Part shown: positions 27,701 to 64,000 of the stretch, one piece after another
Layout: every line of letters starts with the position of its first letter
Numbering within the stretch: position 1 is the stretch's first letter
DNA from: Mizuhopecten yessoensis
Lineage: Eukaryota
Length of the DNA stretch: 64,000 nt
Direction: 5' to 3'
NCBI RefSeq assembly: GCF_002113885.1
Contig: NW_018480074.1
Coordinates: 124,001 to 188,000 of the forward strand
Made by a program: the position numbers and the translations under genes
Notes under the pieces: generated by a model
Database searches by the model: none
Seen by the model: only the letters and a program-made list of their open reading frames with translations
Told to the model about the DNA's origin: nothing

Positions 27701-30700
27701 GTTCTGTGTTGTGTCTGTTCTGTGTAGTGTCTGTTCTGAGTAGTGTCTGTTCTGTGTGGTGTCTAATCTCTGTGTAGTGTCTGTTCTGTGTAGGGTCTGT
27801 TCTGTGTGGTGTCTGTTCTGTGTTGTGTCTGTTCTGTGTAGTGTCTGCTCTGTGAAGTGTCTGTTCTGTGTAGTGTCTGTTCTGAGTAGTGTCTGTTCTG
27901 TGTGGTGTCTAATCTCTGTGTAGTGTCTGTTCTGTGTAGTTTCTGGGCTGTGTAGTGTCTGTTCTGTGTGGTGTCTTTTCTCTGTGTGGTAACTGTTCTC
28001 TGTATGTCACCTGTTGTCTGTAGTGTCTGTTCTGTGTTGTGTCTGCTCTGTGTGGTGTGTGGTGTCTGTTCTGAGTAGGTTCTGTTATGTTTGGTGTCTG
28101 TTCTGTGTTGTGTGTGGTGTCTGTTCTGTGTAGGTTCTGTTATGTTTGGTGGCTTTTCTGTGTGGTTACTGTTCTGTGTAGTGTCTGCTCTGTGTAGGGT
28201 CTGCTCTGTGTGTGGTAACTGTTCTCTGTATGATCTCTGTTGTCTGTAGTGCCTGTTCTGTGGGGTCTGTTCTGTGTGGTGTCTATTCTCTGTATAGTGT
28301 CTGTTCTGTGTATTGTCTGTTCTGTGTGGTGTCTGTTCTCCGTGTGGTAACTGTTCTCTGTATGACACATGTTGTCTGTAGTGTCTGTTCTGTGTTGTGT
28401 CTGCTCTGTGTGGTGTGTGGTGTCTGTTCTGTGTAGTGTCTGGTCTGTGTGGTGTCTGTTCTGTGTGGTGTGTAGTGTCTGTTCTGTGTGGTGTCTGTGC
28501 TGTGTAGTGTCTGTTCTGTGTAGTGTCTTTTCTGTGGTGTCTGTTCTGTGTGGTGTCTATTTTCTGTGTAGTGTCTGTTCTGTGTAGTGTCTGTTCTGTG
28601 TGGTGTCTGTTCTGTGTGGTGTGTGGTGTCTGTTCTGTGTAGGTTCTGTTATGTTTGGTGTCTGTTCTGTGTGGTTACTGTTCTGTGTAGTGTCTGTTCT
28701 GTGTGGTGTCTGTTCTGTGTGGTTACTGTTCTGTGTAGTGTCTGTTCTGTGTAGTGTCTGTTCTGTGTGGTTACTGTTCTGTGTGGTTACTGTTCTATGT
28801 AGTGCCTGTTCTGTATGGTGTCTGTTCTCTGTGTGGTAACTGTTCTCTTTATGACATCTGTTGTCTGTAGTGTATGTTGTCTGTAGTGTCTGTTGTCTGT
28901 AGTGTCTGTTCTGTGTGGTGTCTGTTCTGTATGGTGTCTGTTCTGTGTAGTGTCTGTTCTCTGTGGTTACTGTTCTGTGTAGTGTCTGTTCTGTGTGTTG
29001 TCTGTTCTGTGTGGTTACTGTTCTGTGTGGTGTCTGTTCTGTGTGGTTACTGTTCTGTGTAGCGTCTGTTCTGTGTAATGTCTGTTCTGTGTGGAGTCTG
29101 TTCTCTGTGTAGTAACTGTTCTCTTTATGACATCTGTTGTCTGTAGTGTCTGTTCTCTGTGGTTACTGTTATGTGTAGTGTCTGTTCTGTGTGGTGTCTG
29201 TTTTGTGTAGTGTCTGTTCTGTGTAGTGTCAGTTCTCTGTGTGGTAACTGTTCTCTTTATGACATGTAGTGTCTGTTCTGTGTGGTGTCTGTTCTCTGTG
29301 GGGTAACTGTTCTCTTTATGACATCTGTTCTGTGTAGTGTCTGTTCTGTGTTGTGTCTGTTCTGTGGGGTTACTGTTCTGTGTAGTGTCTGTTCTGCGTG
29401 GTGTCTGTTCTGTGTTGTGTCTGTTCTGTGTGGGGTGTGGTGTCTGTTCTGTGTAGGTTCTGTTATGTGTAGTGTCTGTTCTGTGTAGTGTCTGTTGTGT
29501 ATGGTGTCTGTTCTCTGTGTGGTAACTGTTCTTTTTATGACATCTGTTGTCTGTAGTGTCTGTTCTCTGTGGTTACTGTTCTGTGTAGGGTCTGTTCTGT
29601 GTAATGCCTGATCTGTGTGGTGTCTGTTCTCTGTGTAGTAACTGTTCTCTTTATGACATCTGTTGTCTGTAGTGTCGGTTGTCTGTAGTGTCTGTTGTCT
29701 GTAGTGTCTGGTCTCTGTGGTTACTGTTCTGTGTAGTGTCTGTTCTGCGTAATGTCTGTTCTGTGTGGTGTCTGTTCTCTGGGTAGTAACTGTTCTCTTT
29801 ATGACATCTGTTGTCTGGAGTGTCTGTTGTCTGTAGTGTCTGTTCTCTGTGGTTACTGTTCTGTGTGGTGTCTGTTCTGTGTAATGTCTGTTCTGTGTGG
29901 TGGCTGTTCTCTGTGTAGTAACTGTTCTCTTTATGACATCTGTTGTCTGGAGTGTCTGTTGTCTGTAGTGTCTGTTCTCTGTGGTTACTGTTATGTGTAG
30001 TGTCTGTTCTGTGTGGTGTCTGTTTTGTGTAGTGTCTGTTCTGTTTAGTGTCTGTTCTGTTTGGTGTCTGTTCTCTGTGTAGTAACTGTTCTCTTTATGA
30101 CATCTGTTGTCTGTAGTGTATGTTGTCTGTAGTGTCTGTTCTCTGTGGTTACTGTTCTGTGTAGGGTCTGTTCTGTGTAATGTCTGGTCTGTGTGGTGTC
30201 TGTTCTCTGTGTAGTAACTGTTCTCTTTATGACATCTGTTGTCTGTAGTGTATGTTGTCTGTAGTGTCTGTTCTCTGTGGTTACTGTTCTGTGTGGTGTC
30301 TGTTCTGTGTAATGTCTGTTCTGTGTGGTATCTGTTCTCTGTGTAGTAACTGTTCTCTTTATGACATCTGTTGTCTGGAGTGTCTGTTGTCTGTAGTGTC
30401 TGTTGTCTGTAGTGTCTCTTCTCTGTGGTTACTGTTCTGTGTAGTGGCTGTTCTGTGTAATGTCTGTTCTGTGTGGTGTCCGTTCTCTGTGTAGTAACTG
30501 TTCTCTTTATGACATCTGTTGTCTGTAGTGTCTGTTGTCTGTCGTGTCTGTTCTCTGTGGTTACTGTTCTGTGTAGTGTCTGTTCTGTGTGGTGTCTGTT
30601 GTCTGTAGTGTCTGTTCTGTGTGGTTACTGTTCTCTGTATGATATCTGTTCTTTCTGTGATATCTGGCATAATAGTTTCTTCTTTATAATCATGTTTGTC

Positions 30701-45405: not shown

Positions 45406-46397
45406 TTAGTCCTCTTCGTGCTGGGTTGCACATATGGCCACCACCAGATATTTCCATTTCTGACTGTCTTGGGACCACTGGTGTATTTGTCCCCATGTCC
45501 AGTCTTTATCGTTTAGCTCTTTCTCAACAGACCGTTTCAAGGTTTCCTTTGGTCTCCCTCTCTTTCTTTTTCCTGGTGGTGTCCATCTCATTGGTACCCT
45601 AGGGATGGAGTCTGGGTGCATTCTGGAGACATGTCCAATCTACCTCCATCTCATTGCTACCCTAGGGATGGAGTCTGGGTGCATTCTGGAGACATGTCCG
45701 ATCCACCTCCATCTCCTTCGCTTGACTTCTTGTGAAAGAGGAATGATATTTGTCCTCTGATACATCTCCTCGTTTGAGATGGTCTGTGGCCAGAATTCCG
45801 CGGACGCATCGAGTTTGAAAGACATTCAATTTGTTGTTAATAGCACTTGTTGTCTTCCAGGATTCTGCGCCATACCAATTTGGTGTTGGTGCTGATCTTG
45901 GTGGACTTCCAAATTTTCCTGAGTGATGAAAATGCTCCTCTGGCCTTTGAAATGCGAGCTTGTACATCAATATCAGAATTACCATCTGCCGGGATTTGCT
46001 TCCTAGGTAGACAAATTCGTTCATTTCCTCGATGTTTAATGGATTTATCGGACCTGGACTGGCATTGATGTTAAGTCCTATCTGTTTTGCTGTTGTAGCC
46101 AGGTGGTTGGTTTTGCCTTGTATATCTTGATATCGATGACAGCAGCATGATATCGTCTGCGAAATCTAGATCTTCCAGCATCTCTCCAAATGTCCAACTA
46201 ATCCCTCTATTTGTGTTCCTGGTGGTCTCTTTCATTATCCAGTCTATACAAAATGTGAAGAGTAGCGGGGAAAGCAAACACCCCTGTTTTACCCCTGTCC
46301 GCAGTGTGATCGCCTCTGTTAGCCTTGATCCACATATCACTCTTACATTGAAGTCAGCATACAGCATCCTTATGATGGAGATGAGTCTATTGTCCAT
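45406..46397 (-). mobile_element. 5'-truncated, frameshifted non-LTR retrotransposon (RTE-type reverse transcriptase remnant)
   Basis: Broken ORFs with GVKQGCLLSPLLF, LEDLDFADDI, FVYLGS, YGAESW, RRRWRWIGHV, GKRKRGRPK; internal 63-bp tandem duplication at 45581/45644. Confidence 0.92.
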
Positions 46398-47701
46398 ATT
46401 AAAAAAGGATTAATAAAAACAAACATAATAAACAAATTAAACAATATAAAATAACTTTAGGAATTCATCTTTATTTCAAAACAACAAAATAACATCGAAG
46501 TCCGTGTAGAGATGCACGTTTTCTTTGAGTATTTCAGACATTTAAGTAATTCCGTTTTATGATGATTTTGGATTCTTAAAAACAGACAAAACATTTAAGT
46601 CTATTGTAGAAAGTTTCACATCAGATAGTTCATCATGGCGACAGCAACAATCAGTGAGTTAATTAATCTATTTTTGCACTTTAGAATAAAAAGAAGCCTG
46701 CTTTGGTTACATCATTTAAGCATTTTTTTTCTTCAAAGGTGAAAAGAAATGGTACCATGAAAGTGAACGACAATGTAGAATTATACGAGTATTTGATCAA
46801 TGAATCATTCAAAGTAACTGCGGACAAGAAAATGTATTTTTCTTACTGGATTTAATTATCAGATTCGTTAAATCATAATTACGTTCAGGGCTCGTATTCA
46901 TGACACCGTTCTCGTGCCCAAAGTGCCCAAACTCTGATTCTGTGCTCAAGCCCAACATCTTGTTCCGGCGATTAACTCATAACAACTCACGCCTGGTCAA
47001 TGGTTTGGGCGAATGTTTGGGAGACTTGAAGTCGAATTTCGTTTTTGGCGTAAGCACTTGACTTTTTCACCGTGTCACACGATTTTACCATGTTACAAGA
47101 AAGTTGGTTAGAGTACAGAAACCATGCAGGAACGTTAATTGTTCCCCCCCNATTTTATATAGGGTTACAAGCTTACTTAATTCTTATACAAAAAAATGAA
47201 ACTACGCTTGAATATAATACTTTAAAAAAATATGGATCTATGAATGAAAAATGGAAATATATGAAACAGTCTAAGTATACAGAAAGAGATCTCACAACAC
47301 TCAAATATAACGAATTAATATCTTCACCAGAACAGCTAATGTCAACGTAAGCTGAGATATCTTGCAACCTCGTTATAAGTACATATGCCATATGATATCT
47401 ACACAAGATAAGCAAGAACACATAAGATCTCATGTCCTTCTTGTAAGGAAAACTTTTTTTTTTCACACACGATAAGCGAACCATTTTAACCATTAAAACT
47501 ATTTTTATACCAATATAAGTGCATTATTTGATCACCTTTATCAGTGGGGTTAGCTTACACGTAAATGTTTTCCCTAAAAAGAACCATAATTTCTTTCGAA
47601 GTATAGGTGTTATATTCACAGGTAAGATATTATAAGATTCAAAACATGAATATTTCATTTATTTTGTTTCAAAATATCGTAGTATTAATATCGTTCGATT
47701 T

Positions 47702-50700
47702 TTATGTTAGTTCATGATCGTCCTTGACAAAAGTCACGTTCATTTCATCTTTCTTAATTTTCTTTTCCCTGTAGCTGCGAAATAGTGTCACTATCACAGC
47801 ACCAAGGACCAGTCCTGGGAGGAACACACCGAACGCCACACCCACAAACGCACCTGTAAAATAGGTGAGCATGCATATTGTAAATTAGTATCGCATCCAT
47901 GTAACTAACAAATTTCTGGAATAAAACTTAAATTTATTTGAAATAATGTCTCCCTTCGTAAGGTTTAAATCTTAAATAATACCAGATTATATAATTTACC
48001 ATTATAACACAACATATACTGACAAGGTTTGTGGCAGATACTTAAATGCACTGTCTTTTTCTCGGTTATAGAAACAAAGTTTGAATATTTGATCATTCAA
48101 ACAGTAGAACCATCGTACTTATGCTAGATTTCGCTGTGAAAATGCTCATCTGTGCTAATACTAGACTCACCTTTAAAAATACTAGACTAGCTTGTGCTAA
48201 CACTAACCTCACATGTATAACACTAGAATCCCCTGTACAAACACTACACTCACCTGTACAGACACAAGGCTCACCTGTGCAAACACGAGACCCACCTTAA
48301 CAAACACTAGACATACCTGTTGAAAACCCTAGACTCACCTTTATAAACACTAGAATCACATGTACTTACACTAGACTCACATGTACAAACACTAGTCCGA
48401 TATGTACTAACACTAGACTCACCTGTAAAAACACTAGACCGATCTGTACTAACACTAAACTCGCATGTACAAACACTAGACTCACCTTTTCCAATTCTAG
48501 ACTTACCTGTACAACAATAGAATACTAGAATCGCTTTCAAAACACTACGTTAGGCTCACCTGTACAAACACCAGACTCACCTTTATAAACACTACCCTAA
48601 GCTGTTTAAACATTTGACTCACCTGTACCAACACTTTACTCCCTCGCTTAAACAGAAGACGCTCTTTTACAAACCATAAACTCACCTGCGCTAGCATTAG
48701 ACGAGGAGCTGTCAGTCTTGGAAGCAGATTGACCACATCCTGTACCCGGGTTATTACCGGGATTGTAAGGTCGAATGGTCGGCATATTACTTGAAGGTGT
48801 CATTCCAGGGAAAAATCGTCCTGTAAACATGTAAATATAATTAGATTAATAGGGATACTTGATGTACAATGAAAAATCGACAACGGAGTAACAAGAAATG
48901 TTGGTCAAGTCAAATTACAATTTAGAATATTGTTCGATCTGTGTTGAATTTCCCCTCTCGTTCCAGAGCGAAAAGAGAGAAAATAATACTGGGTGAATAT
49001 GTCTCATTTTACAGTATATAACATACTAGATTAAAACTTATCTTAATTAAAATTACTACTCTATTAGTCTATTACTAGAGTAAATTCTATACACATACAG
49101 AATGGATTCTATAGTACTTACTAGTATAAAGACTACAGTTGGCACTGGCGACTACCGATCCTGGAGGAGCCTGCTTTGGTTGTGGGTTATGAAGCATACA
49201 TGTGCTTGTGTTGCTACAGAAGTCGAAACTATGGCAGTTTATGGACTGTTCTTCCACACAGGACTTGGCACATTGTTCAACCGATATCCCTCTGAACAGT
49301 AAAGCTGGGCCGTAATTCATCTGCTTTCCTTCATTCTTCTTGAAATCAAATAAGTACTTCTCTGCCATGAAAAAATATCCACAGTGGGAAGTTACATACA
49401 CAAACATATCTACTTTACGAGGAATCGTTTCAAAGCTTAAAAGCATTAGTTATACTTTCCGAGAAAGGGAGCAGTCTTACTGGTATGTGGGATTTACAAA
49501 TATCAACTAGACCGTTAAACACTTTTTTTTATGAAAAGTGAATACCTAGCAAATCACAGAAAAAATATAGCACACAATAAATTTACAATTAACAATGTTT
49601 TATATAATTAAATGATCCAAATCTATATAAGACTAAGAAAAAAAAACTTCTGCATATTAAGGAGAAATAAAAAAGAACTGATCAACGATCTCTGGTTTAA
49701 GGCTGCAATTAACGTTAATACATTGTGATATGTATTTACTCACTCGAGTAGTGGTTACATTGAGGCGATGTCGTGAGGAAAGAGTCGGGGACATCCAGTG
49801 TGTGTTTTCTTCTCAGTAAACATGACTTGGAGCTGGCACAATAGTCAAATGACTTACACAATAGACTCGTAGTACATCTCTGGGCACACAAGTTGTTCGT
49901 TTTAACAGTTAGCGCGTTTGTGGCTGTCATTTTAAACACCATTCCTGGTAACTCGTCATAATTGTCTAAATACTGACCTGAAAGAAATTCCACCCAATTG
50001 ACAACTTACAGTAATTAAGCACATCTGATACTGTATTAAAACTAGATCTTTCTCTTAATATTTTGTTTATATAAGGACGAATGCTGAATTCTAAAAACTG
50101 TTGAAAAATGGCAATGCCATCGATATTGTATAACAGGAAAATGTCGCCCTTAACCGGTAAATACATTTATGCCTGATGTTAATTTCGCCCTTCACACTTC
50201 ATTACTCTATATTGTTTGCCATGTCTTAATATTCACTGTCACGATAAATTTGAAATTGAAAGAAGGCAAAACAAGCAAAAGGATATACTGCGTCGAAAAC
50301 CTTTTCGTATTAAGTAATGTGTATCCCTTGTGTACGTACGTGAAAAGAGATCACAGGCAGAACTGTACTTGACTTGTTGGAGGTTTTCGTCAGGATGTGT
50401 GGCACTAAGTAAGCAGGTCTCCGAGTTATAACAGTAGCTAAATGACTGACAGTCGAATAAATCCTCCCCGAGACACGCTGCAGCACAGTCGTCCACGGCC
50501 AACCGAGTCTCTTGACCGTCACCTGATCCCGACAGAATGCTGTTCTTCATCTGATGGAATCTACTGAGGATCCGTCCTTTAAATAAATTAATTTTACATA
50601 TTTTAAACCACGGGCCTTTTCTTTTACGTGGAACGACTCAGCAATGATGTGCTTTTAAATGTAATATAAATAAATGTATAAAAGAAAATGAAATAAATAA

Positions 50701-53700
50701 ATTTATAGAAAGAAATGACATGAATAGCAACAAACTTTTCAACAATTGCATAGTTTTGGACTACTAGACTATAACATTTGTTTTGATAAAATGTTACAAT
50801 GAAAATAAGATAAGGGAAAATAGTTGAAAGTAGGTCAAATGGTTTTTTCATGCACTTTAATTGTTTGAAAATATGAATATATGTCATACTCTCGTTTGAA
50901 GACAAATTCTTACATGCAAAACCGGGTTGACATTTTTCTAAATTTATCTTGGGAAATGATAATTGATAAGTTTACGATTAACTCTTTGCATTTGCACCTA
51001 CACAACATTAAAACTGCCTACATCGCAAGGGACCTTTAGGATTAACATTACTTTCAAGCTTTCCCTGTTTTATGAAACAGCGAAACATTCTTATTATTTA
51101 AATAGAATACGATCTTCCGTTTTCGGCTCTCAAATAATAGATTTGAAGGCAGTAACATCCTTATTTTCTTGTCAAAAATATATCCTTTGTTGATTTGATA
51201 AATCTATGTTAAGTTCTAACGATCTCTGATCAAAACGACAAAACAATTCTTACCACCATTTTGTTACTCTTTATACAATGTTTCCCTTTTTGTTACAAAA
51301 AAAGTGTAATTTTTACAGAATTCAAGCCTTCCTTGTCAATATTGATATGTTCATTCAGTCACTTTTGGTAAGAAAAAAATCGCATGGTTTTGAACTTCAA
51401 TTCAATTAGTGAAAAACAGGGTGTTTTGAATTAAGTAGCTTATTATTGTGTTTCAACTATTGGTCAAATACAGTTAGCCAACCTCCCCTGCTCTGCTTTA
51501 TAAATCTGATTAAAAGAATAAGAAATGAAAATTAAGTATCAAACATATCAACAAGTGATGATGTTACCTGTTTGTTGTTGACCATTAGGCCGTACAATGT
51601 CGTCACGGATTGAAGACGCAGAAAATATTTTGGCCTAGCAAAAAAAAAAAAAAAATAGGTCAGCGCTCAGGTAAAAGTGAAGACATTGAAAGAATTAATC
51701 ATGAAGTAGTTTGCCACAAACAATGTGCATTTTTATATTCAAAATAGGCAAACTACCATTCGTACATTTGTCCTGATATACATATTTAATTATTAATTCG
51801 TACATACAGTTGTTTATATTTTCATATGTCCATTAGATAGTTTACATTAAATTAGAACCAGATAAGACAATTCTATTTTCAATATCGAGTAAATATCGTA
51901 ACTATATTACTGCTCAATGATAAAGTTTGTACTATGGCCTTTAATTTGATATATAGTGATAGACATTTATAATGTTGTAGGTGATATGGTGCCTAAGGTA
52001 ACGTATTTGTGTGAGAATATGACTGGTTTACCGTTACCATTTCACCATTGGGGATGGTGACGTTAAACTTCCCTGAGTAAACAACGTTCTTTAGTCTGGT
52101 GTAAGCTTGCTGTATGCTAGGAATAGAAACCGTACTGGCCTGGACAGTTTCTACAACATCAAAGTTGCAATGTGAACATGTATAAGGCCATTTAATGCAC
52201 ATACATATAATATATATATGAATTGGGTAAATGTCTATCGATCATACAACTCTACCAACGAGTTATTTCGGAATAGAATGAAAATCCATTTACCAAGTAA
52301 GTCAACTCTTGACAACGTGGAGCAGTGATAATGAATGTATTACTAAAGCAGCACTACCATGTGAAATTGTGAAGTACATGTGTATAACATGTGATAACAT
52401 ACGTATGCAAAGTACAATTTACTGGAGTATTGTTGACAGTATTAAAACATACAAACTAGAGTAACGATGATAGCATTGTGAAGTATAACGTAATGGCGTA
52501 TTGGGGTGAAGTATAACCGTAAACGTACATATTTAAGCGGTACCCTAATTTTAGCGCTTTCTTTTTCATGGTTTAAATATTGCACTTAATTAAGATTGAA
52601 GTTTCTGAATACAGTTTTCAATTGCATATATTATGAGTGTGCCAATTCACCAATGTGATCATACCCTAAAAATGGAGTCCGCTAAAATAACTACATTTGA
52701 GTTACTTTAGGGGATAGTAGGGATGGCAATAATGCGTAGAATTACTAACTGGAAACGTGATGACAGTTTGAAAAGTATTGCTCACAGTAGAAGTGATTGC
52801 AGTATTATGAAGTATAACTTACTGTCGAAGTGATATGAAGAATTACTTACTTGAATAGTGATAACAGACTGTTCTGACGTTGACCTTCGCTCCGTCCTGA
52901 CTATGATTTTTGTTGAGGAAACAATAGTTGGCCTGGGGGCAGTAGTCAAAACTATTGCAAGGGAAGCTGCTGAGAGAGCTACAGAGGTCAGCGCAGCTTT
53001 TCACCGTACCGATATTAGGGAAATTGGCATCAGACTTGTGGGGTGAGAATGTTCCCGGCACCAACGTGAAATCATCTATAATAAAAAAAAAAAAAAATGA
53101 TGTCAGCTACTGGTAATTACACTTTTATCAGTCCGTTTTGTAGTGATCTACTACAACGAGGTAATGACACATTTGATAAAATTCTAACGGTAGAGTTAGA
53201 TCTACTAGGACGACAGATATATGATACCTAGAACAATACAAGGGTAAGTAATTTTGTTTTCGTCCTTGGCCGGTAATGACAAGAATAAATGACGTGAAGG
53301 TCAATCAAATACTCAAATAACTGTTTAACCCTCCATCCCTAGTCACTTCTTGTTTACCCAGGAAAGGGTTCCTGCCGAGGAGAGTGCTTGTGACGTAGAT
53401 ATTGTCGTCATCATAATCCACCTGTGTTCCCTGGAAACGGATGACGGATGCATTGGTGCACTCAGACATTTTTATCTGGGACATCAGCTGGAATATTTTG
53501 CTGTAGATATCCAAGAATGGATGGAATTTACCTACAACACAGCACACCAGATCATGAAGAGTATTCTTGGATACATTAAACTTAAAATCAGTAATTAAAA
53601 TGATACATGGGGAATTTTGCTTCATCTGTAAAAAGGCATTAATGAACAGTTCCGCATAAAAATAATTGACTGATTTTATCTTATGTAAATTTCTTTTGTT

Positions 53701-56700
53701 ACAAAACCGCATTATTCGAAATGACAAATTATTTCAAGTCCATTTCTAGAGCTAGGCCATTTAGTTTATTTCTCTTTAACCGTATGTTTAGTGACAAACG
53801 GGCCTTTAATAAAGATAGTTGTGAGCATTCACAACCCCAAAAGTCGTGTTACGAGTTTAAACAGAGAGCCGTGCGACTAAGATTAACAAATGAACTTTAT
53901 TTCAGCAGCAATTCTGAACATATAGTGTTATAAATTATACTGACTTGTTCGTTTTGATTACAATGGCTACAACTTGCCAAGCTCATTTATAAAAACGAAT
54001 TAAAACATTTTTGTAAAATAAATTTATCAATCTAAGTCTATTTGCACAAAAATGCACAAGTCTATGGTGAGAAAGTGCGTGCAAAGTTTCATGGAATAGG
54101 CCAAGGACATAAACGGTAACCTGGAGAAAACTGTGTTAAATACAGATGAATTCACTACCTACTATTTGTATACTTTGTGTATAATTGTTAAATATGATTG
54201 ATTTAAAAATATTTACAATAATAATTCAGCAATGAGAAGTACGGAGAGACCGACAAGAAGCAGTGCAGTGCAGACAATGTTCAGTCACTATGCACTGCAG
54301 GATAGGAGACCAATGCAAGGCTGTGGTAATATATATCAAACATGGTCGCTCTGAGGAAACCAATGCAAAGCTTTAGTGTTTGGAAGATAGATAACTGGAG
54401 TACTGGAAAAAATCAAAGAAAGTTTGTTCTTGGTGTCTTGGATGATAAATGGAGGACTGGAGGAAAGCAATGCGACGCTGCAGTGATTTAGATGCTATAG
54501 TGTAAATGTGCTTGGTGAAGATATGATTCTGAAGGTGAGTTACTAGTCATAAGACGAACTGACCAGGAAATTGAATTTGAAAATGGCGTTGATTGGCTTC
54601 ACTGAAACATTTTCTGATATCAAAGACAGAAAGATCTGGGTGTGACACTTCCTCAAAGTCAAAGAAGTCATATGCAATAAATAGACTTTGCTGTGAAGAG
54701 AAAAAAACCATAAACCATACAATTCATCGTAGTAAAACTCAAACTTGATGTAAACCAAGGTTGTACATATATATACTGGATATAAATTAGGGACTCACGT
54801 AAATTATCAATTGTAGTTTTGATAGGGTTTAAGTAGACATAATACCCGCGGCTTTGAAAACGAGTAACAAGCGTGAATATACGTTCCCGGTAAATCATCT
54901 ACTAGTATAACGTCGATTTCATTTGACTTTATCTTAATTCAACACTAATGACCTTGACGCAACCTAGAATAACTGGTGTGATCTTGGTGTAACACCCATG
55001 CTAAATAATCTGTAAATGTCCACATCTTTCACGTGCACATATTACTTTTGAAACAGGATGAGGATCATGGACCGAACAAATATTTTGGTCTTTAATTCCT
55101 TCAACTTTTCAAATTAAACTCCGGACTCTATTTATAAGAGTTTTGTTCAGAGCTTTGTTTCCTGGTCCAATACCTTCTATCCACTAGTAAATATACTCTC
55201 TGTGAACCGACATCAAAACGCGTCTTGTCTAGTTCAATCCCTTATACTAGACAGGAAAGTTAACAGTTGACTAGTCTTATTTAACTTTCCCGGGTACATG
55301 CAGATGAGGATATATTTTTTTATCATAATATCACTGGATTTTTATTAACATTGTTCTGCTGATATCGTTGGCGATAAATGAATGATAATTGAATATCTCT
55401 TATGAATGACATTTTTTTATCATTATTGTTAATGAAATCACATTTTTTTTTTGAGCACAAGTATTTTTTTGACGAGTACAAGTGATTTTATATGAGAACA
55501 AAATGTAGCATTCTCAGCTGTGTTCTTAGTTCTCATTACAATCAACAATATTCAAACGAACTCTCTGAATCCGCAAATCTCTAAATGATGTCCAGGGGGG
55601 AGGGGGGGGGGGACTCCCTGAACCCCCCTTCACAACCCCTAGTAAACACGTATCTTAAACCAGCCTGATAGTAAATATATATGTGCGGATATGTACAGAA
55701 GAGCATTAGGACCACGTAGAAAAAGATATTAAGTCGAAGTCTCGAGTTAGTCAAAATTTCGAGTTATCTTGAAATCTCGACTTACTCGAAATTTTGATGT
55801 AGTTACACGAAAAACATCTAAATGTGTTTGTTATTCTACGTAGCCCTGAGATTCTTCAGTAGTTATCTTTGTTTTATGTTGCATGCTATAATCCCAATTT
55901 AATAATACAGTATTATATATTTAAGAGATACTTCTGACTGCAATTAACCTGCTACAAGTAATGCATCATGGAGATCTCTATTACATTGGTCTTATTATAC
56001 ACACGAGTTTTTACCTGCATTATTGTCATCTCCATGCGGACAGGTTGAGAAAACGTCAGATCCCTGGAATCCTCTGGCACTTCCGTCCAGCCACCCTACG
56101 GATAAACGGTGCTTTTTCAAGTTAAGACCATCTATTTCCACATCATTACAGAGCAGTAATATTTACTTCCGGTTATTAAAACGTCAATTGCATTATGACA
56201 TATATCATAAATATCCGTGATGACTGGCCGGAAATGTTTTATTTCGATTGGAGACACATTCACGATACTATGATTTGTTATATGTGAGACTTACACATGG
56301 TTAGAAGTAAATTTTGGTAACTTCAATCATAGTGTGGTTGCAGAGGGCTACACACGTTTAATAATATTAGTGTTAAGCTAATTACAACCATACTCATGTT
56401 GTTGCAACTAAAAGGCAGTTTAGTCCCTTATGCTTTTCAAATTATTGTTTTTTGATACTCTAAGGCGATTCTGAGTCTCGTACTCAGTTGTGCTTTGCCA
56501 ATCATACTTCGTTGAAACTTCAAAATCGAAGTTTTGAAAACATGATTGCTTTACACACCAAGAAGACCAAAATTTGAAAAATATAAGATATGATATAACA
56601 ATGTATTTATAAATGCAATGTAATACAAATTTCTATCCTAGTGCTCAACGGTTGAGCTTAACGGAAATTTGCACTAGCTGAACCATTAACAAACGACTAA

Positions 56701-59700
56701 ATAAGTTACACCCTATTGTAAATTAACATCGTAGTCACCGAGGGTTACCGTAACATTTATCACCACATTTAGCACGGTTCATAACAAACATACTTAATTG
56801 ATTATTAATTTGAAATTCTTTTTGAGTTATTCCACCCTTTTTGACACCTAGCTTCAGCGATGGGTTCTAGAATCAGCTGTATGGCGCAGTAAAAATCATG
56901 TATTGGCATACTGTATTAATTTCCAAATTTTATAGGGATCCATATTTTTTTGTTACATTCATCTTCTGAGACATACAATGTAACCGCATTGTTTTCGTCG
57001 TATTTGAGACATTTAAAACTTATTCGCAAATCATAGGATTTGCTAGAGTGTATTGTTAACGGGCTTCTGATATTTTTACATAGAGTGATATTATTTCTCT
57101 TAGTGTGAAACTGATATTGGGATTAACATTTCCTGCTGAACATTTCTAATACAAAATTTCCATTTCAGAAATAGGGAAGCCTTGCTGATATTTACCTCGA
57201 GGAAGAAGTACCTGATGAGAGCTGTGTTGTTGGTAAAAGACAGTCCTGGCATACCGAAGTTCTGAACGAGGATTTCGTAACCACTACAAAGTTGGCCTCG
57301 AATAGATTTCTGGAGAAAAAAATGTTTGGTTTACTTACATCAATTTCAGTCATTACCATATGATCATACTGTTCTTCGGAATCTGTTAGCGTATATTTTA
57401 CAATAAACTTCCCTCGGAATAGTATAAATATATACATGCTATTAAATGTACGACAAAATTTATAAATCGTCGTTTAAAACATGCAGCCTGGAAAATTGAC
57501 AACAGAGCTTACCTCAGCCAAGTACATGCACTTTAATACATGTGAACAATTAAAAATACTTATCTCAAAAAGATTAATGATTATTCAATATAGATTACAC
57601 CTGACTCACTCAATTACCTGTCCGATAAATTTGTAGTTATTAGATATATGGAAAAATTCAAGTGGGCTCTTCATCTGCACAACATACGCTCCATTTTTCA
57701 GGGCGACCTTTGGATCTACTTCACTGTCAATACCGGCGGATCCAATGGGTGCCACGGTACAGTTCTCAAAGTCCCTATCAATAGTATAGGCCACACCTGC
57801 AAAGTGGTGAAAAGGAGTAAATAGGAGCCTCAGTACTCCACACCTGCAATATGGGGTTCAGATGCTTGTATTAAAGGGAGAATGGGAGACATGGTACATT
57901 CTTGTAAATCCTTGTGTTATTTTGCCAAACCTCTAATAATGCTAAAATGTTTGATATAAAAGTATAAATTGGAGCAGTATACATTCTTGCAAAACCCTAA
58001 AGTATTGGCAAAGCTAGTGGTGAAAAATTGGTATTGAAAGAATGAATGGGATCTACGGTACAGTTTTGTGAAACTCTGTGATGAAGGCCACATAGGTTAT
58101 AAGGTAGCAATGTACAGTAAAAATGGCCTAAAATAAAGGGCATGTCTCAGATAAACATGGATAGTGGAATCATCCTGCGAAACACACCTACTAACAAATA
58201 TATATTTATAAACTGCATTTTTGATATATATTTTTGAGAAGTATGATTTTTTCAAGTAGTTAATATTACCTACTCGGTAAGAGAAATACTCAAGTTTTAG
58301 CATAGGTAATCCGGTGGATTTTCCAATTCATTTACGCAGAGTACAAAAATAGACTTCATGAAAAGCTAGCTTTTGGTGTGCCCACGTAGTCCACTTCATC
58401 ATGTATATACCAATTTTAGTGCTGATTTTTGTTAACATTTTGAGAAATGTAATATTACAGGGGCTATTCATTATACAAAAATATCACTCATGGCCACTGT
58501 CACTACTATGCACTGCTACCTAAAGCTTAAACTGTGATACGGACCTGTGTTGAAGTCATGTATGAGTGTCATCGGGTTGGTGGAGTAAAACGGCGGTGTT
58601 GGCTTGTAGGATTGATGGTAATCATATCGTACAAATTTGTAAGAGGAATCGTACCAAACCTGCAAAGATTTAGTCGACTGTTTTAATTCGGAGGTCTTTG
58701 ATTACAATTAGAAATCGTCCAATTAATTCCTGTTTATATTTGGTCGGGTTTGGTACACCTAAAAGAACGTTCTCGGTCTTCAAAGTCAGATTTATCAAAT
58801 AAAAAAGTTAAAACATTAATACATAATGCTAAAAAATAATCTTTTACCTTGAAATATTGAATAATTTGGAGAAGAACCAAACATTAACTATTTGTTGTTA
58901 TTTTATGTCTTATGAATCAAACAAAACTACAATCGATAGCAGCTTTTCACACCTTCAATTGTCCTTACATACACCACAGTAAATCAATTTCTTAATAATA
59001 AAAAAATGTTACTGCAACTATCACATATACGACTTCTTGATTTCTCAAGTTCAAGCCACCCTGTGTTGATTATACCTTCTCCCTAATCCTCCCGAAACGT
59101 CAACGCAAATTTCGTTTATTTTCAAAAATGTATATAACTTCCATACCCTTGACTATATTCACATTTTTGTCTAAGAGAAAGACAAAGATTTAAGAATTCA
59201 AATTGGAACGAAATGCACACGTCTAACAGCGTATATTTTGCTTATTGAAATTCGAGATTTTCATAATGCTACTATCAAATACTCTTCATAAGAGCATATG
59301 TCTATGATGTAATTTTGGTTTATGCTTGCATACATTGAAACAAGAATAACAATGGAGACATTCTTGTTAAATTCAACTTACCTTGGAACTGTATACCTCG
59401 GCTATGCTTGGTATTGTGACTTCCTGGCTGTAGGAGAACTGACCCGATAGCTTGGGCATTGCTACAGGGGTGATCAGCCCTTAAGTAAAAACAGAGAATA
59501 CCAAAGTGTCAACAAAACTCAAAGTTGATGAAGACAGTTGATGCAACAAAACCCAAAAGAACACAAATTAGCATAATAACGAAATGAACATTCCCAACGC
59601 CCAAATGAATCATGATGGCGACTTCAACTTTCCCATAACATTCCTCATACAGCATCATTCGATTCCTGTATTGTACGTTCGTCAGCATATATAATGAAAT

Positions 59701-62700
59701 TGTGTTTTTCGGAGCAAACTCGTGAATATATCTGCAACAAACATCAAAGATAGGCAAAGCAGGAATAGTACTATCAAGAAAGGAAGATGTTACGGTTGGA
59801 AAATCAAAATCGTCACTCTTATACAGCTTACTAGTAAGCCGTCCCTTTTGGTCGTGTTGTAAGTCAGTGGTAGAAGAGTGGGTATTACCCTTGATTTAAA
59901 GTTCAGGAGAGTGAATACCATCTACGTAATTAATAAATTTCTTGTTATTTAAAAAAACAATCCATCAAAATTGAAGGACTTTGGTCTTTGTAACTTGATA
60001 AAAGAGCTAAGTTTTCAGTTAAATAATGTTAATATGTTATTGATATAAAACTTCGGACGTTAAACTGAGGCTTTAAGGGACATACAATGGTAGATATTAT
60101 TGATATAAAGGGTTCAATACTCACCTTGTATGACCTGTGTATCCACGGCCTCGTATTCAACCATCTTCAAAAAGACAGTAAACATAATTGAAGACGTTTC
60201 AATTCATTCAAAATTGAAAATGTCGTTAAAATCACGAATATTTATTCATCCCAGTCTCTACAACATGAATTGTAAATTGATACAGTGACCAAGACGGGAC
60301 GATAATATGTAACCCAATAAACGAAATACAACTTTCTTGCAAAAAGGTAAACGTTTCGCAACGTTTTAACGATGTGTCTATTAAGTCAACATAACGAAAT
60401 CAACTATACTCTCTAATCAGATACACGCTTACTATCATATTTTATTAAGTGTCCTACCTGACTATTATCCTCTTCTACCTGAAACATCAATTCCTGGTTG
60501 TAAACAGCAATGCGGAGGGCAGCATATGCATCCAGTATAGTTACCTCAGGTCGACGTGGGGCATTCACATTTCCTGGAATATATGTTTTCTTAATTGAGA
60601 AAATACAGAGACTAGTGTTATGTTATCAATTTTGAATTTTTGGTATAACACTTTCAATTTTGTTTTAAATAGTTGTTGAAGTACGATTTGCGACATGTCT
60701 TACTGACATGAAAGGATCACATCACCTCAATTCGATTTACTTCTTAATATTGTGAGTGGATCATATAACGAGTTTCTTTTGAGAAATAGAAACAAGGATT
60801 TTAGACGTGTTTAACAAAAGAAGTGGAATCAAATGATCTGTTTCTGTAACAATCCTATATAACATATCATAACACCTTGTGGGTTAACAGTTGATTTCAA
60901 GCCTTTTGTTGATTTCTTTCATCTTCTTCAGTACAGGCACACTGACGCACATAGAAGCAAATGTATCAGGAATTGTGGGTGGGTTTGATGGACGATATTG
61001 GAATATTGATGGACAAATATCATTTGAGTATAAAGAGCAGAGTCTCTGGTGAGTCCTTACTTGAGTAATGAGAGCAAGGACTCTGGATGAGTACTGCTGT
61101 CCCGTCACCAATATGGCTGCGGCTGAGACGACATGAGCCACTGTCCATAGGACAGAAATCGAAACTATTACACGTGATATTTTTCAGGTCCACACAGAAG
61201 TCAGCACACTCCATAGGAGAGGTAGTTTTGGGAATCACCATATCGTCGTGTTTCTCAATCTCCCGCCCAGTAATGTATGTGAACTGAGCTGAAATGTAAA
61301 TCCTGGAATTATTCATAGGTATTACAATGTTTCCTCCCCACGTTTTGGACTGTATTGCATACCAGCACTATTAACGATAATTTGGTTACGTTACTTTATG
61401 GTAGGTTATCCATTTTGCAACTGGTTGCTAGTGTCCAGAGTGTATATAATACAAAATTAATTAACCTTTCGTTCCTTTTTTTCTTTTAAAAATCAAAATT
61501 TAAAAAAAAAAAAAAATCAAATTTCGTCTGGTTTTCATTGAAATTGTACCATATGCCTAGTAACTGTCCCCTATAACATTCATGTTCACCAAGCGTAAAA
61601 TTAATCCCTCAGTGAGATAGATTCTCTCTTCACAAGTTAAATTCAAACTTACAAAAGTCTTTATCGCACTTCACAATGGAAATACTCAGTAATCAGTGTA
61701 CTTATATACTTTGTAGCGATCAATTTGGGCTAATTACGGAAGCCGAAAAGTCAACTACGGCAAGCAGTTTCTGGTATATAGAAATCACGTGCTGTATTTT
61801 CGCCGTTGAAGGTGCATCAACACCTTTAATGTATGACTTTATAGTTGAAATAGTAGTTAGATAGAACGTTTGTGAATTTAGTATATAATATTTGCTAATA
61901 TCAGGCTATACGCCGTTTCCCAAAGTATAAATAAAAAACAGAAATAAAATTTGTTCGTTTTCGGTTTATTGGATAAAGTTGTGGAAAACGTCAAATATCA
62001 ATTTTACTCTCTTTCTCCTGGTTTAGCCCTTTGGTTTTTCCTAGAAATATAGTGGGAATGTTGAATTAAGCCTGTATTAATATAAGCCCATTAAGAGGAG
62101 TCATTATGTTCACTTCTTACCTGTAGCTGGAGTCCGGTCCAGCAATGTGGCAAATAGAAACACGTCACCTACGTCGCGTTCGACAAAGACATCTTGGACC
62201 CGTATAGGCGAAACACTCATTTTCTCTGCCATGAGTAACCGTGTCTTCAGTTTAAATATATCGGCTGTATCCTGGTTATATAAAGCTGCAGAAAAGATAT
62301 AAATGATCAATATTAAAAGTTAAAAAATAAAAGCAAAATTTTATAAATTAAAACTGATATCTTTACGCGGCCTGAACCAGTTACTGTGATGTGCTTACCG
62401 TTTGTCTTTAATGGACTAGATAAGCCAGTATAACATTGAAATATAATCACGTTCGTCTAATCTACTGATCAATGCCCTTTTTATTTCAACATTTGACAAA
62501 CACAGCAACTTTAACGTTGTTAAAAGTGCCCTAAACGATACCCTGTACCTCAAAATTACAAGTCTCTGCAATATGCAATCTCAAAGAAATGGTATATACA
62601 TATTGTATTGTTAATAATAAATAAGTACACTGGTGGTATTGACCAATCAAACCGGTTCATCTTATTCATTGCATCCAAACTATCGCTCATTTTAATATGC

Positions 62701-62992
62701 AATATCTACATGGAAACAGGTTTAAAAACTTTTCAATATTCAATAACTACATACTTTGGAAGTAATCTTTGTTAGAATTTAATATTCATATACATCCAAA
62801 GGAATGGTAACTAATGTTGATTTTCTAACATATAACTTGATTTTAAGCATTGTATTTTAAATACGCACCTGGGAAGCGGATGTTGAATTGAAATTTAGAT
62901 TCGGGTGGATAACAGGATGAGATTTGGTATGAGGAGAGGTCTGCATGTTGATTGTCAAAGTCTATAATGTTGTAAACTCGGTAGAAATCAGC
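47702..62992 (-). CDS. Uncharacterised type I membrane glycoprotein with five PAN/apple domains, ependymin/LolA-like and SEA-like regions (5' part outside window)
   Basis: 20 phase-consistent exons: 62992-62869, 62285-62121, 61288-61061 (PAN), 60573-60458, 60164-60125, 59479-59382, 58659-58545, 57796-57618, 57309-57196, 56095-56015, 54690-54564, 53531-53358, 53075-52851 (PAN), 52150-52038, 51634-51568, 50576-50340 (PAN), 49977-49744 (PAN), 49361-49122 (PAN), 48820-48686 (S/T/P stalk), 47853-47702 (TM GAFVGVAFGVFLPGLVLGAVIVTLF, short tail, TAA). PAN signature C-A-x-x-C...C-x-S-F-(D/S)-(Y/F)-C...C-x-L...C-x-x-(Y/F). AATAAA on - strand at 47658-47663. Confidence 0.88.
48145..48690 (-). repeat. 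Degenerate 21-bp tandem repeat made of splice-donor copies, last intron of the PAN gene
   Basis: Sense-strand unit gtttgtacagGTGAGTctagt, in register with the true donor after 48686. Confidence 0.88.
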
Positions 62993-64000
62993 CTGTAAGG
63001 ATAAAATGAGTTCTGTTATTGCAATCAGTTATACCAATATATTTACAGTTGCTCAATTGCAATGCATTGAGAAGGCAAATGTTGACAACATTTGCTATTG
63101 TTACGTCATCAATCTCTTGTGACGTCATCAATTTCGTTGATGTCAACACTTAACTTCCTGTTCAAATAACGGTTCGAAATAACTAAATCAAGCGTAACTA
63201 CTCTATCAAAATGTAAATGTATATAATGAATATCTTAGCAAATGTTATTATAGCCCTATAACACACATTTATATTGCTGACAAACTCACATAAAGCCCTG
63301 TCGTGCTTTCTTAAGTTTTTCATGAATATCTAAGTGTGTTATAGGACCATAACAACATTTGCTAAAACATCCATTGCTTAAGTGTGTGTATAATGCTTCT
63401 ACATATTTTCAAATGTGTTTTGACCGCAAAGTCTTTCAAATGATCAGAAACGTTATTGGTAATTTGACATGTAGTATTAAAAAGAAATAACAAATACATA
63501 ATTGCATAATTTAATCAAAATTAGTAGCTAGTGTATTGTCATGCGATTTTAAATAATCTTTTAGTCTTGTGACCCTAAACATAAATGCATGTTCCAGTAC
63601 ATTGACACCTAGATGTTATGGCAAAGAGCATTTGACGTTACATCTATTAATAATAGTACTATAAATATTTCAATATTCATTAGTAATGATCTTAACAAGC
63701 ACGTCCATACCTGACTGTCATCACTGATATGACACACTCATTAAAAAATATATACACCTATCATACATAGGTTAATTATTATGAGTCATGTTAAGCATAT
63801 AAAATATATAATAAAAATTACAAACCGTGCGATGCTTAAGATACATTCAAATCATTGGCACGTCAGAAAGGCGAGGATTTATTACGCTTGCACAGACGGA
63901 AAGTAAACAAGAGTACCGCGAGCTGGAACAATACACGCCCGTCGAATGCCATATAGTGTTATACACTTTCTTACATTGAAATAAGATCTGCATCATGTAA

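Follow-up and report, generated by a model that had tools for sequence, protein, structure and literature searches.

What a protein may do when it joins a LolA-like fold to PAN (apple) domains and a membrane anchor is the question raised by the minus strand of a 64,000-nucleotide (nt) stretch of Mizuhopecten yessoensis DNA (contig C76747:124001-188000, in an assembly of 987,588,634 bases and 82,659 contigs; hereafter the window). An earlier note, made from the letters of this DNA, had placed at positions 47702-62992 a receptor-like protein with an ependymin/LolA-like domain, SEA-like domains and five PAN domains. We found that this interval is the 3′ two-thirds of a transcribed gene, LOC110443619, whose isoform X2 product (label P0051; 1,428 amino acids, aa) bears the public name "uncharacterized protein". 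The product is almost certainly a type I single-pass membrane glycoprotein of the secretory pathway, built from three LolA/ependymin-fold domains and five apple domains. Taken as a whole, this transcribed gene with this architecture and a role as a tethered binder of hydrophobic ligands form a reading that, on balance, we believe. The earlier interpretation was partly borne out: the LolA-like fold stood, the SEA-like domains and the extent of the gene did not.

The interval is the 3′ part of a transcribed 30-exon gene

We threaded P0051 on the genomic DNA from residue 3 to the stop codon (47702-47704). It passes through 30 GT-AG coding exons with zero mismatches, 20 of them inside 47702-62992, and reading frame and intron phases are unbroken across all 30, which is what the check by splicing and translation proposed in the earlier note had asked about. 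The exon for the first two residues (M, E) lies upstream of L004:1103, outside the threaded span, L003 and L004 being labels for the following 20 kb of the same contig, beyond the window end and on the upstream side of the gene. The chain is made up of stop-free minus-strand segments with AG/GT borders and includes every motif quoted earlier (YNIIDFD..FNIRFP, YDFFDFE..FQIQFP, SPIRVQD..TLLDR, SVIRFQG..TLLGR, LSGQFSYSQE, VWYDSSYKFVRYDY, AYTIDRDFENCTV, IRGQLC and PVRME), all of them on the minus strand. Both boundary coordinates proved exact, 47702 being the final base of the stop codon and 62992 the opening base of a coding exon with a clean AG acceptor before it. The gene does not, however, start at 62992: it extends about 11 kb beyond the window end, where a signal-peptide exon and further LolA-like domains A and B are located. 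Two small linker exons within the window (60125-60164 and 51568-51634) had been missed as well. The in-window exons, with the evidence that places each of them, are as follows.

62869..62992, minus: exon 11 (aa 442-482), which ends LolA-like domain B and encodes its conserved C-terminal cysteine (C468) and the FNIRFP strand (P0051 threading; AG acceptor and GT donor both clean; paralogue of exon 21)
62121..62285, minus: exon 12 (aa 483-537), X1a, first half of a split alpha/beta domain (long helix and beta-hairpin), phase 1-1, 165 nt (threading; homology to the modelled X2a; transcript loose end 61291 enters exon 12)
61061..61288, minus: exon 13 (aa 538-613), PAN/apple domain 1 as one symmetric phase-1 exon of 228 nt with six Cys (single-exon PAN_4 match, E 0.0043; transcript joints)
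60458..60573, minus: exon 14 (aa 614-652), X1b, which completes the split alpha/beta domain and carries the helix AYAALRIAVY (threading; transcript; homologue P0002 aligns)
60125..60164, minus: exon 15 (aa 653-665), a micro-exon of 40 nt that serves as a linker (joints 59478/60124 and 60164/60458 in transcripts of two runs; threading)
59382..59479, minus: exon 16 (aa 666-698), LolA-like domain C exon 1, LSGQFSYSQE (transcript; threading; AlphaFold2 model)
58545..58659, minus: exon 17 (aa 699-736), domain C exon 2, VWYDSSYKFVRYDY, carrying the YD..R motif (transcript; threading)
57618..57796, minus: exon 18 (aa 737-796), domain C exon 3, with the invariant Cys C749 in ENCTV (transcript; threading; query of the exhaustive search)
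57196..57309, minus: exon 19 (aa 797-834), domain C exon 4, IRGQLC with C804 (transcript; threading)
56015..56095, minus: exon 20 (aa 835-861), domain C exon 5, PVRME (transcript; threading)
54564..54690, minus: exon 21 (aa 862-903), domain C exon 6, YDFFDFE..DLSVFDIRKC with C889, then FQIQFP (threading; transcript loose end 56015 enters exon 21)
53358..53531, minus: exon 22 (aa 904-961), X2a (helix and beta-hairpin), phase 1-1, 174 nt (threading; model)
52851..53075, minus: exon 23 (aa 962-1036), second PAN/apple domain, on a symmetric phase-1 exon that interrupts the X2 domain
52038..52150, minus: exon 24 (aa 1037-1074), X2b, helix AYTRLKNVVY, closing the split domain (threading; model)
51568..51634, minus: exon 25 (aa 1075-1096), short linker exon (threading)
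50340..50576, minus: exon 26 (aa 1097-1175), PAN/apple domain 3, phase 1-1 (PAN_1, E 1.1e-9; threading)
49744..49977, minus: exon 27 (aa 1176-1253), PAN/apple domain 4, phase 1-1 (PAN_1, E 9e-9; threading)
49122..49361, minus: exon 28 (aa 1254-1333), PAN/apple domain 5, phase 1-1 (PAN_1, E 1.8e-8; threading)
48686..48820, minus: exon 29 (aa 1334-1378), Ser/Pro/Gly-rich stalk, phase 1-1 (threading)
47702..47853, minus: exon 30 (aa 1379-1428 and stop), single transmembrane helix and 25-aa cytoplasmic tail (threading; stop 47702-47704; hydropathy; helix and tail kept in the family)

Spliced transcript contigs from two RNA runs of different studies (X8 and X11) link eight of these exons, namely PAN1, X1b, the 40-nt micro-exon and C1-C5; in X8 they come as a single 4,901-nt contig at depth 35. 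Every stretch that the transcript contigs skip ends in CT..AC, which is GT..AG on the minus strand, and loose ends of the transcripts continue into X1a and C6. A further run (run X2) had an unspliced or genomic appearance.

Positions 58108-58475, in the intron between exons 17 and 18, are a repeat that reached very high depth in all four runs, with many loose ends and a summed contig word depth of up to about 2,500. It has the look of a dispersed repeat that is transcribed independently of the gene's own expression.

A nine-exon cassette occurs twice in the protein

Whole-protein analyses were done on the public product P0051, and exons were searched singly. From the N-terminus, the protein is laid out as follows.

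Signal peptide: N-terminus, upstream of the window (L004)
Domain A: aa 37-237, upstream (L003)
Domain B: aa 238-482, L003, with its final exon in the window
X1a: aa 483-537; PAN1: aa 538-613; X1b: aa 614-652; micro-exon linker: aa 653-665, window
Domain C: aa 666-902, window
X2a: aa 903-961; PAN2: aa 962-1036; X2b: aa 1037-1074; linker exon: aa 1075-1096, window
PAN3-5: aa 1097-1333; Ser/Pro/Gly stalk: aa 1334-1378, window
Transmembrane helix: about aa 1379-1403; cytoplasmic tail (25 aa): aa 1404-1428, window

The internally duplicated multi-exon module described in the earlier note is real, and larger than described. A cassette of nine exons (six LolA-like exons, X-a, PAN and X-b) is present twice with matching sizes, 123/112/179/111/87/124/165/228/116 nt in one copy and 98/115/179/114/81/127/174/225/113 nt in the other, and the intron phases of the two agree at every exon but the first. 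Domain B matches domain C in sequence with an E-value of 3e-42. L003 carries two more exon sets of the kind seen in the window, one of them paralogous exon for exon to the domain C set; across one such pair, exon VWYDEAYRLVRLDY of L003 and exon VWYDSSYKFVRYDY of the window, identity is 54%. The cassette is an ancient nine-exon duplication.

The transmembrane helix is the sole Kyte-Doolittle window above 1.6 in P0051 (aa 1376-1406), and together with a short acidic/hydrophobic tail it is conserved in the family from chiton to bivalves. P0051 has 18 N-glycosylation sequons. Family comparison of the cytoplasmic tail found no canonical YxxPhi or dileucine motif and no signalling domain.

The last intron, between the stalk exon and the transmembrane exon, holds a minisatellite at 48145-48635 with a 21-nt unit (about 23 copies, 67% matches). 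On the minus strand the unit contains CAG|GTGAG, the same donor as the one that ends the stalk exon at 48686, and since the period is 21 nt, use of a later predicted donor would lengthen the stalk by whole 7-aa steps.

The repeated domains have an ependymin/LolA fold

The earlier note had proposed one ependymin/LolA-like domain from the pattern of the sequence. Sequence profiles gave a faint but consistent signal for it, and Pfam Ependymin matches below the cut-off in five family members point the same way. A Pfam scan of individual exons matched Ependymin to none of them, and a search of the PDB with two-sequence exon profiles returned nothing at E <= 10. With a 76-sequence profile of the B/C domains (A3), three PDB sequences came up at E <= 10, two of them EPDR1 (E 0.24) and the third the Bri2 BRICHOS domain. 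The alignment of A3 to EPDR1 keeps its register through the N-terminal half, where it pairs both the YD..R motif and the invariant Cys, but an E-value of 0.24 is not significant. D70, R77, W151, P174, F191 and F204 are the conserved superfamily positions of EPDR1 (PMC6363788). In this same E 0.24 alignment, the YD...R of EPDR1 that falls on the family motif was taken as D70/R77, numbered from the construct offset; for W151, P174, F191 and F204 the family gave no reliable alignment. The central Cys that follows the IHDFN..Y.ID motif is the only one that the tool aligned with EPDR1.

Structure prediction was decisive. The AlphaFold2 model of P0051:666-902, built with A3, is nearly all beta (pLDDT 89.1, pTM 0.84) and has the curved antiparallel beta-sheet half-barrel of the LolA type. 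When it was compared with the PDB by Foldseek, the top 14 matches were all EPDR1 from human, mouse and frog (E 1.7e-8 to 9.4e-7; TM-scores 0.58-0.69 by target), followed by the sponge EPD-BCP1, VioE, LolA and LprF. The predicted fold is thus LolA-like, as had been suggested. Domain A in turn matches the B/C profile with an hhalign probability of 99.1% (E 1.6e-18, 189 columns). The fold model of C and the homology among A, B and C indicate that P0051 has three LolA/EPDR-fold domains rather than one.

The cysteines are consistent with this assignment. Ependymin-related proteins (EPDRs) have a four-Cys profile at alignment positions 23, 94, 148/107 and 186, including a C113/C210-type pair (PMC6280359). 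Domain B has C244, C328, C383 and C468 in a spacing like that profile, domain A has C25, C109 and C168 and misses the C-terminal one, and domain C has C749, C804 and C889 and misses the N-terminal one. By their sequence, the conserved cysteines of the three domains appear to fit a diverged EPDR pattern. If EPDR pairing applies, C109 of domain A and C804 of domain C miss their usual partner, and they may be free or form an inter-domain disulfide.

A stretch at aa 726-752 (exons 17-18), and the same place in domain B, reads IHDFNTG..Y.ID....C and resembles the core motif of BRICHOS. Bri2 BRICHOS matches A3 with an E-value of 0.16 over a 41-residue motif, Pfam BRICHOS is sub-threshold in the paralogue P0001, and PF04089 is precomputed on a clam relative (P0058). 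We rejected membership in BRICHOS (PF04089), as the whole domain folds as an EPDR-like beta structure; we take the resemblance to be a local one.

Five apple domains, two of them inserted in an alpha/beta domain

The five PAN domains, the Ser/Pro/Gly stalk, the transmembrane helix and the 25-aa tail that the earlier note had listed are all present in P0051. Pfam PAN_1 matches the whole protein in five stretches (E 4.4e-35), above threshold, and both the conserved Cys pattern and the fold are those of PAN/apple PF00024. A single symmetric phase-1 exon, 225-240 nt long, encodes each PAN domain; the X1a, X2a and stalk exons are phase 1-1 as well. Matches to these domains include HGF N, SML-2 and MIC4. 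PAN/apple domains bind proteins or carbohydrates; HGF N binds heparin, and SML-2 and MIC4 are galactose-binding lectins.

The SEA-like domains named in the earlier note were not borne out for the regions around PAN1 and PAN2. Neither P0051 nor the X exons gave a match to Pfam SEA (PF01390) at E <= 1. X1a and X2a of P0051 have no G-S pair and hence no G/SVVV-type autoproteolysis site; a loose GS[VIL][VIL] string occurs in 6 of the 74 family modules. The X alpha/beta domain, a putative sandwich, matched SEA at noise level only, the juxtamembrane alpha/beta sandwiches compared with it being the MUC16 SEA domain, the IA-2 ectodomain, the Trop2 C-domain and the SorCS2 membrane-proximal domain. SEA membership is accordingly unsupported. 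Instead, the model of P0051:903-1075 (pLDDT 87.4) runs from a long helix through a beta-hairpin and the PAN domain to a second helix, which means that PAN2 is inserted inside a small alpha/beta domain. The model suggests a sandwich topology for the X domain, in which a putative first strand was clipped from the modelled construct and the last strand is of low confidence. The locus is a clear case of domain insertion, twice over, with a symmetric phase-1 PAN exon placed between the halves of an alpha/beta domain.

A molluscan family already catalogued at the domain level

To follow the distribution of the family, which the earlier note had named as a check, we ran an exhaustive representative search with one exon (59 aa, from 57618-57796) and word-indexed searches with a family profile and with P0002, the closest relative, whose search returned P0051. 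The exhaustive search gave 40 matches. About half of these are proteins some 850-1,450 aa long, in the majority of which the exon matches at two places; their public names, in bivalves and gastropods, are "uncharacterized" or "Apple domain-containing". Two large matches with PKD or FG-GAP repeats look unrelated. The same full architecture is found in about 30 mollusc proteins of 1.2-1.5 thousand aa. Named members are all molluscan, from bivalves (including Mytilus and Solemya), gastropods and the chiton Liolophura. No relative outside molluscs was named in these searches, whose sensitivity is limited by the short query and the word index.

Three family loci were found in this genome. The paralogue P0001 (LOC110457136) lies on another contig of the same assembly and gives per-exon matches of 74-97%, mostly at least 85%. 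A third copy, at C1999:808102-824445, matches P0001 at 45-51% in two exons. In a maximum-likelihood tree (quick search, SH-aLRT support only, midpoint root), the bivalve sequences form two well-supported clades and the gastropods are separate. LOC110443619 falls together with orthologues of scallop, oyster, pearl-oyster and ark-clam-like type, and with two sequences from heterodonts (Mya, Mactra); LOC110457136 belongs to the second bivalve clade. Identity between bivalve orders is 45-48%, and the two clades are ancient.

Is the family already characterised? The domains are catalogued, while no functional study was found. Precomputed Pfam annotation places PF25898 on P0051 and all large relatives and PF25899 on P0051 too; ESM Atlas names them LolA_2nd_metazoa and DUF7959, respectively. 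If DUF7959 is domain A, it is also LolA-like, domain A being homologous to B and C. In the ESM Atlas, the nearest clusters (TM-scores 0.81-0.84 by query) come from molluscs, bear the name "Metazoan 2nd LolA-like/PAN domain-containing protein" and have PF25898 in 95-100% of their members. An arthropod "Apple domain-containing" cluster (0.74) is a lead outside molluscs, and the chordate Ependymin cluster scores 0.60/0.65. In UniRef, one fragment is named "LolA-like domain-containing protein". We found no literature on PF25898, PF25899, DUF7959, LolA_2nd_metazoa or six locus names, and no paper that pairs ependymin with an apple domain. The domain-level assignment is therefore already in public databases, as PF25898/PF25899 and the Atlas clusters represent the same family as P0051 in entries with no function attached; the tandem, membrane-anchored, apple-bearing form differs from the described EPDRs.

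EPDRs are described as soluble, dimer-forming and mostly single-domain proteins of about 200-213 aa (PMC6280359, PMC6363788). Compared with EPDR1/MERP and the fish ependymins (PF00811), P0051 is 1,428 aa long, has three such domains, of which A and C each keep three of the four cysteines, adds a transmembrane anchor and apple domains, and stays below the PF00811 cut-off. EPDR-cathepsin fusions (CfaD-like) are a precedent for an EPDR/LolA-like domain joined to other modules in secreted eukaryotic proteins (PMC6363788), and they appear among the ESM Atlas structural neighbours. In those fusions the partner of one EPDR domain is a papain-type protease and there is no transmembrane helix, whereas P0051 has apple domains and a membrane anchor. 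The bacterial relatives of the fold (LolA/LolB, LprG/LprF/LppX, RseB/MucB, VioE) have no detectable sequence relationship to the P0051 domains, have no disulfides (PMC6363788) and act in the periplasm or cell envelope, VioE being an enzyme. Among apple proteins, neither HGF N, plasminogen PAN, factor XI/prekallikrein nor MIC4/SML-2 joins PAN to a LolA-like domain, while P0051 also has two PANs inserted in another domain.

A membrane-tethered binder of hydrophobic ligands as the likeliest role

What, then, could this protein do? LolA-fold proteins hold acyl chains, glycolipids and further hydrophobic molecules; EPDR1, whose groove is deep and hydrophobic, was found with polyethylene glycol/lipid bound and binds anionic liposomes (PMC6363788). 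By analogy, we tentatively propose that the likeliest role of P0051 is that of a membrane-tethered binder of hydrophobic ligands. The protein would be at the cell surface or cycle via endosomes; up to three LolA-type pockets would hold lipids or lipid-like ligands, and the apple domains would place the molecule by binding to glycans or partner proteins. The short, motif-less tail suggests a receptor for capture, presentation or transfer, or a co-receptor, rather than a signalling enzyme; the protein contains neither a catalytic nor a signalling domain.

Several observations weigh against this. The Pfam Ependymin profile scores 16.6 bits on whole P0051, for a cut-off of 32.3, and 26.3 bits, still below it, on the best family member (P0006), the sub-threshold matches being in five members (P0051 and four relatives); scores below the cut-off mark the domain as a distant ependymin relative whose pocket may be altered. 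VioE is an equally good structural match, yet it is an enzyme. The sponge EPDR binds carotenoids at the dimer interface rather than in the pocket (PMC10470211), so the LolA fold does not guarantee that the pocket is used. Finally, the raw RNA run X20 has zero reads on exons of the gene and reads only on the intronic repeat, which indicates that expression is not ubiquitous.

A more specific version of the tethered binder, which we regard as a long shot, is a relay: the three LolA-like domains would hand hydrophobic cargo between an extracellular carrier and the plasma membrane, mouth to mouth as in the bacterial LolA-to-LolB transfer, with the apple-split alpha/beta modules as spacers and docking sites.

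Of the explanations that compete with a tethered binder, the one that survives best, though we judge it unlikely, is a matrix or adhesion protein. Its ectodomain, perhaps shed at the stalk, would be part of the shell matrix, periostracum, byssus or mucus, with LolA-like and apple domains acting as protein-protein modules. Single-domain EPDRs recur in mollusc shell-matrix proteomes (PMC3374290, PMC2989941, PMC6003135); apple domains are typical adhesion modules, and the many sequons and the mucin-like stalk would suit such a protein. Nevertheless, the conservation of helix and tail from chiton to bivalves favours a membrane-anchored role, and a literature search with six locus names found no mention of them.

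Somewhat less probable still is an innate-immune pattern-recognition receptor, in which the LolA-like pockets would bind the acyl chains of microbial lipoproteins or lipopolysaccharide and the apple domains microbial glycans. The bacterial relatives LolA, LprG and RseB bind exactly such ligands (PMC6363788), and the members found to date all come from molluscs, animals that rely on innate immunity. The small number of loci in this genome and the two ancient bivalve clades, with their 45-48% identity between orders, are unlike fast-expanding immune receptors, however, and the tail has no signalling domain. A carotenoid pigment-binding protein, by analogy with the sponge ependymin-related blue carotenoprotein, is very improbable: EPD-BCP1 is a soluble heterodimer with its pigment at the interface, whereas P0051 is membrane-anchored and multi-domain, and nothing in the analysis links it to colour. 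Lastly, although large multi-exon predicted models are sometimes fused and some database relatives are fragments, a wrong fusion of neighbouring LolA-like genes with a PAN receptor is essentially refuted by the one contig that runs from PAN1 through C5 and enters X1a and C6, by frame and phases continuous over 30 exons, and by the recurrence of the architecture in about 30 mollusc proteins.

Repeats and other elements around the gene

A 4.7-kb tandem array at 25967-30638 has a 16-nt unit (CTGTTCTGTGTGGTGT; about 285 copies, 75% matches), and the extreme GC and AT skew of that block is due to it. The intron upstream of exon 11 contains, at about 63053-63381, a dispersed element of about 330 bp found at at least 40 other places in the genome with 79-85% identity; part of it also matches in reverse, like a miniature inverted-repeat transposable element (MITE). 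The introns after the signal-peptide exon (L003:7569-9599 and L004:1603-2885) hold long tandem arrays in which several frames stay open; the repeated peptides there include PVDVFRSTVCCIDQLTFLG and NMNIHILIF. Downstream of the gene, the minus strand at 45665-46409 translates into reverse-transcriptase-like peptides with frame breaks and is probably a decayed retroelement. There is a single N base at 47151.

Significance for the family

The significance of these findings is bounded by the fact that the domains are already in Pfam (PF25898, PF25899) and that the function put forward here is an inferred one. What they describe is a mollusc-wide family in which three LolA-fold domains are set on a membrane anchor beside five apple domains. 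For EPDRs, crystal structures with a LolA-type lipid groove have not yet made the biochemical role clear (PMC6363788). Its conservation from chitons to bivalves suggests a function under long-term selection. If the relay were true, the family would be a eukaryotic membrane-anchored, multi-pocket lipid-transfer device made from a duplicated [LolA-X(PAN)] exon cassette, and the long-unexplained ependymin fold would gain a testable transport role. A tethered receptor also offers a handle on what this fold binds in animals, as it can be localised, knocked down and pulled down together with its ligand.

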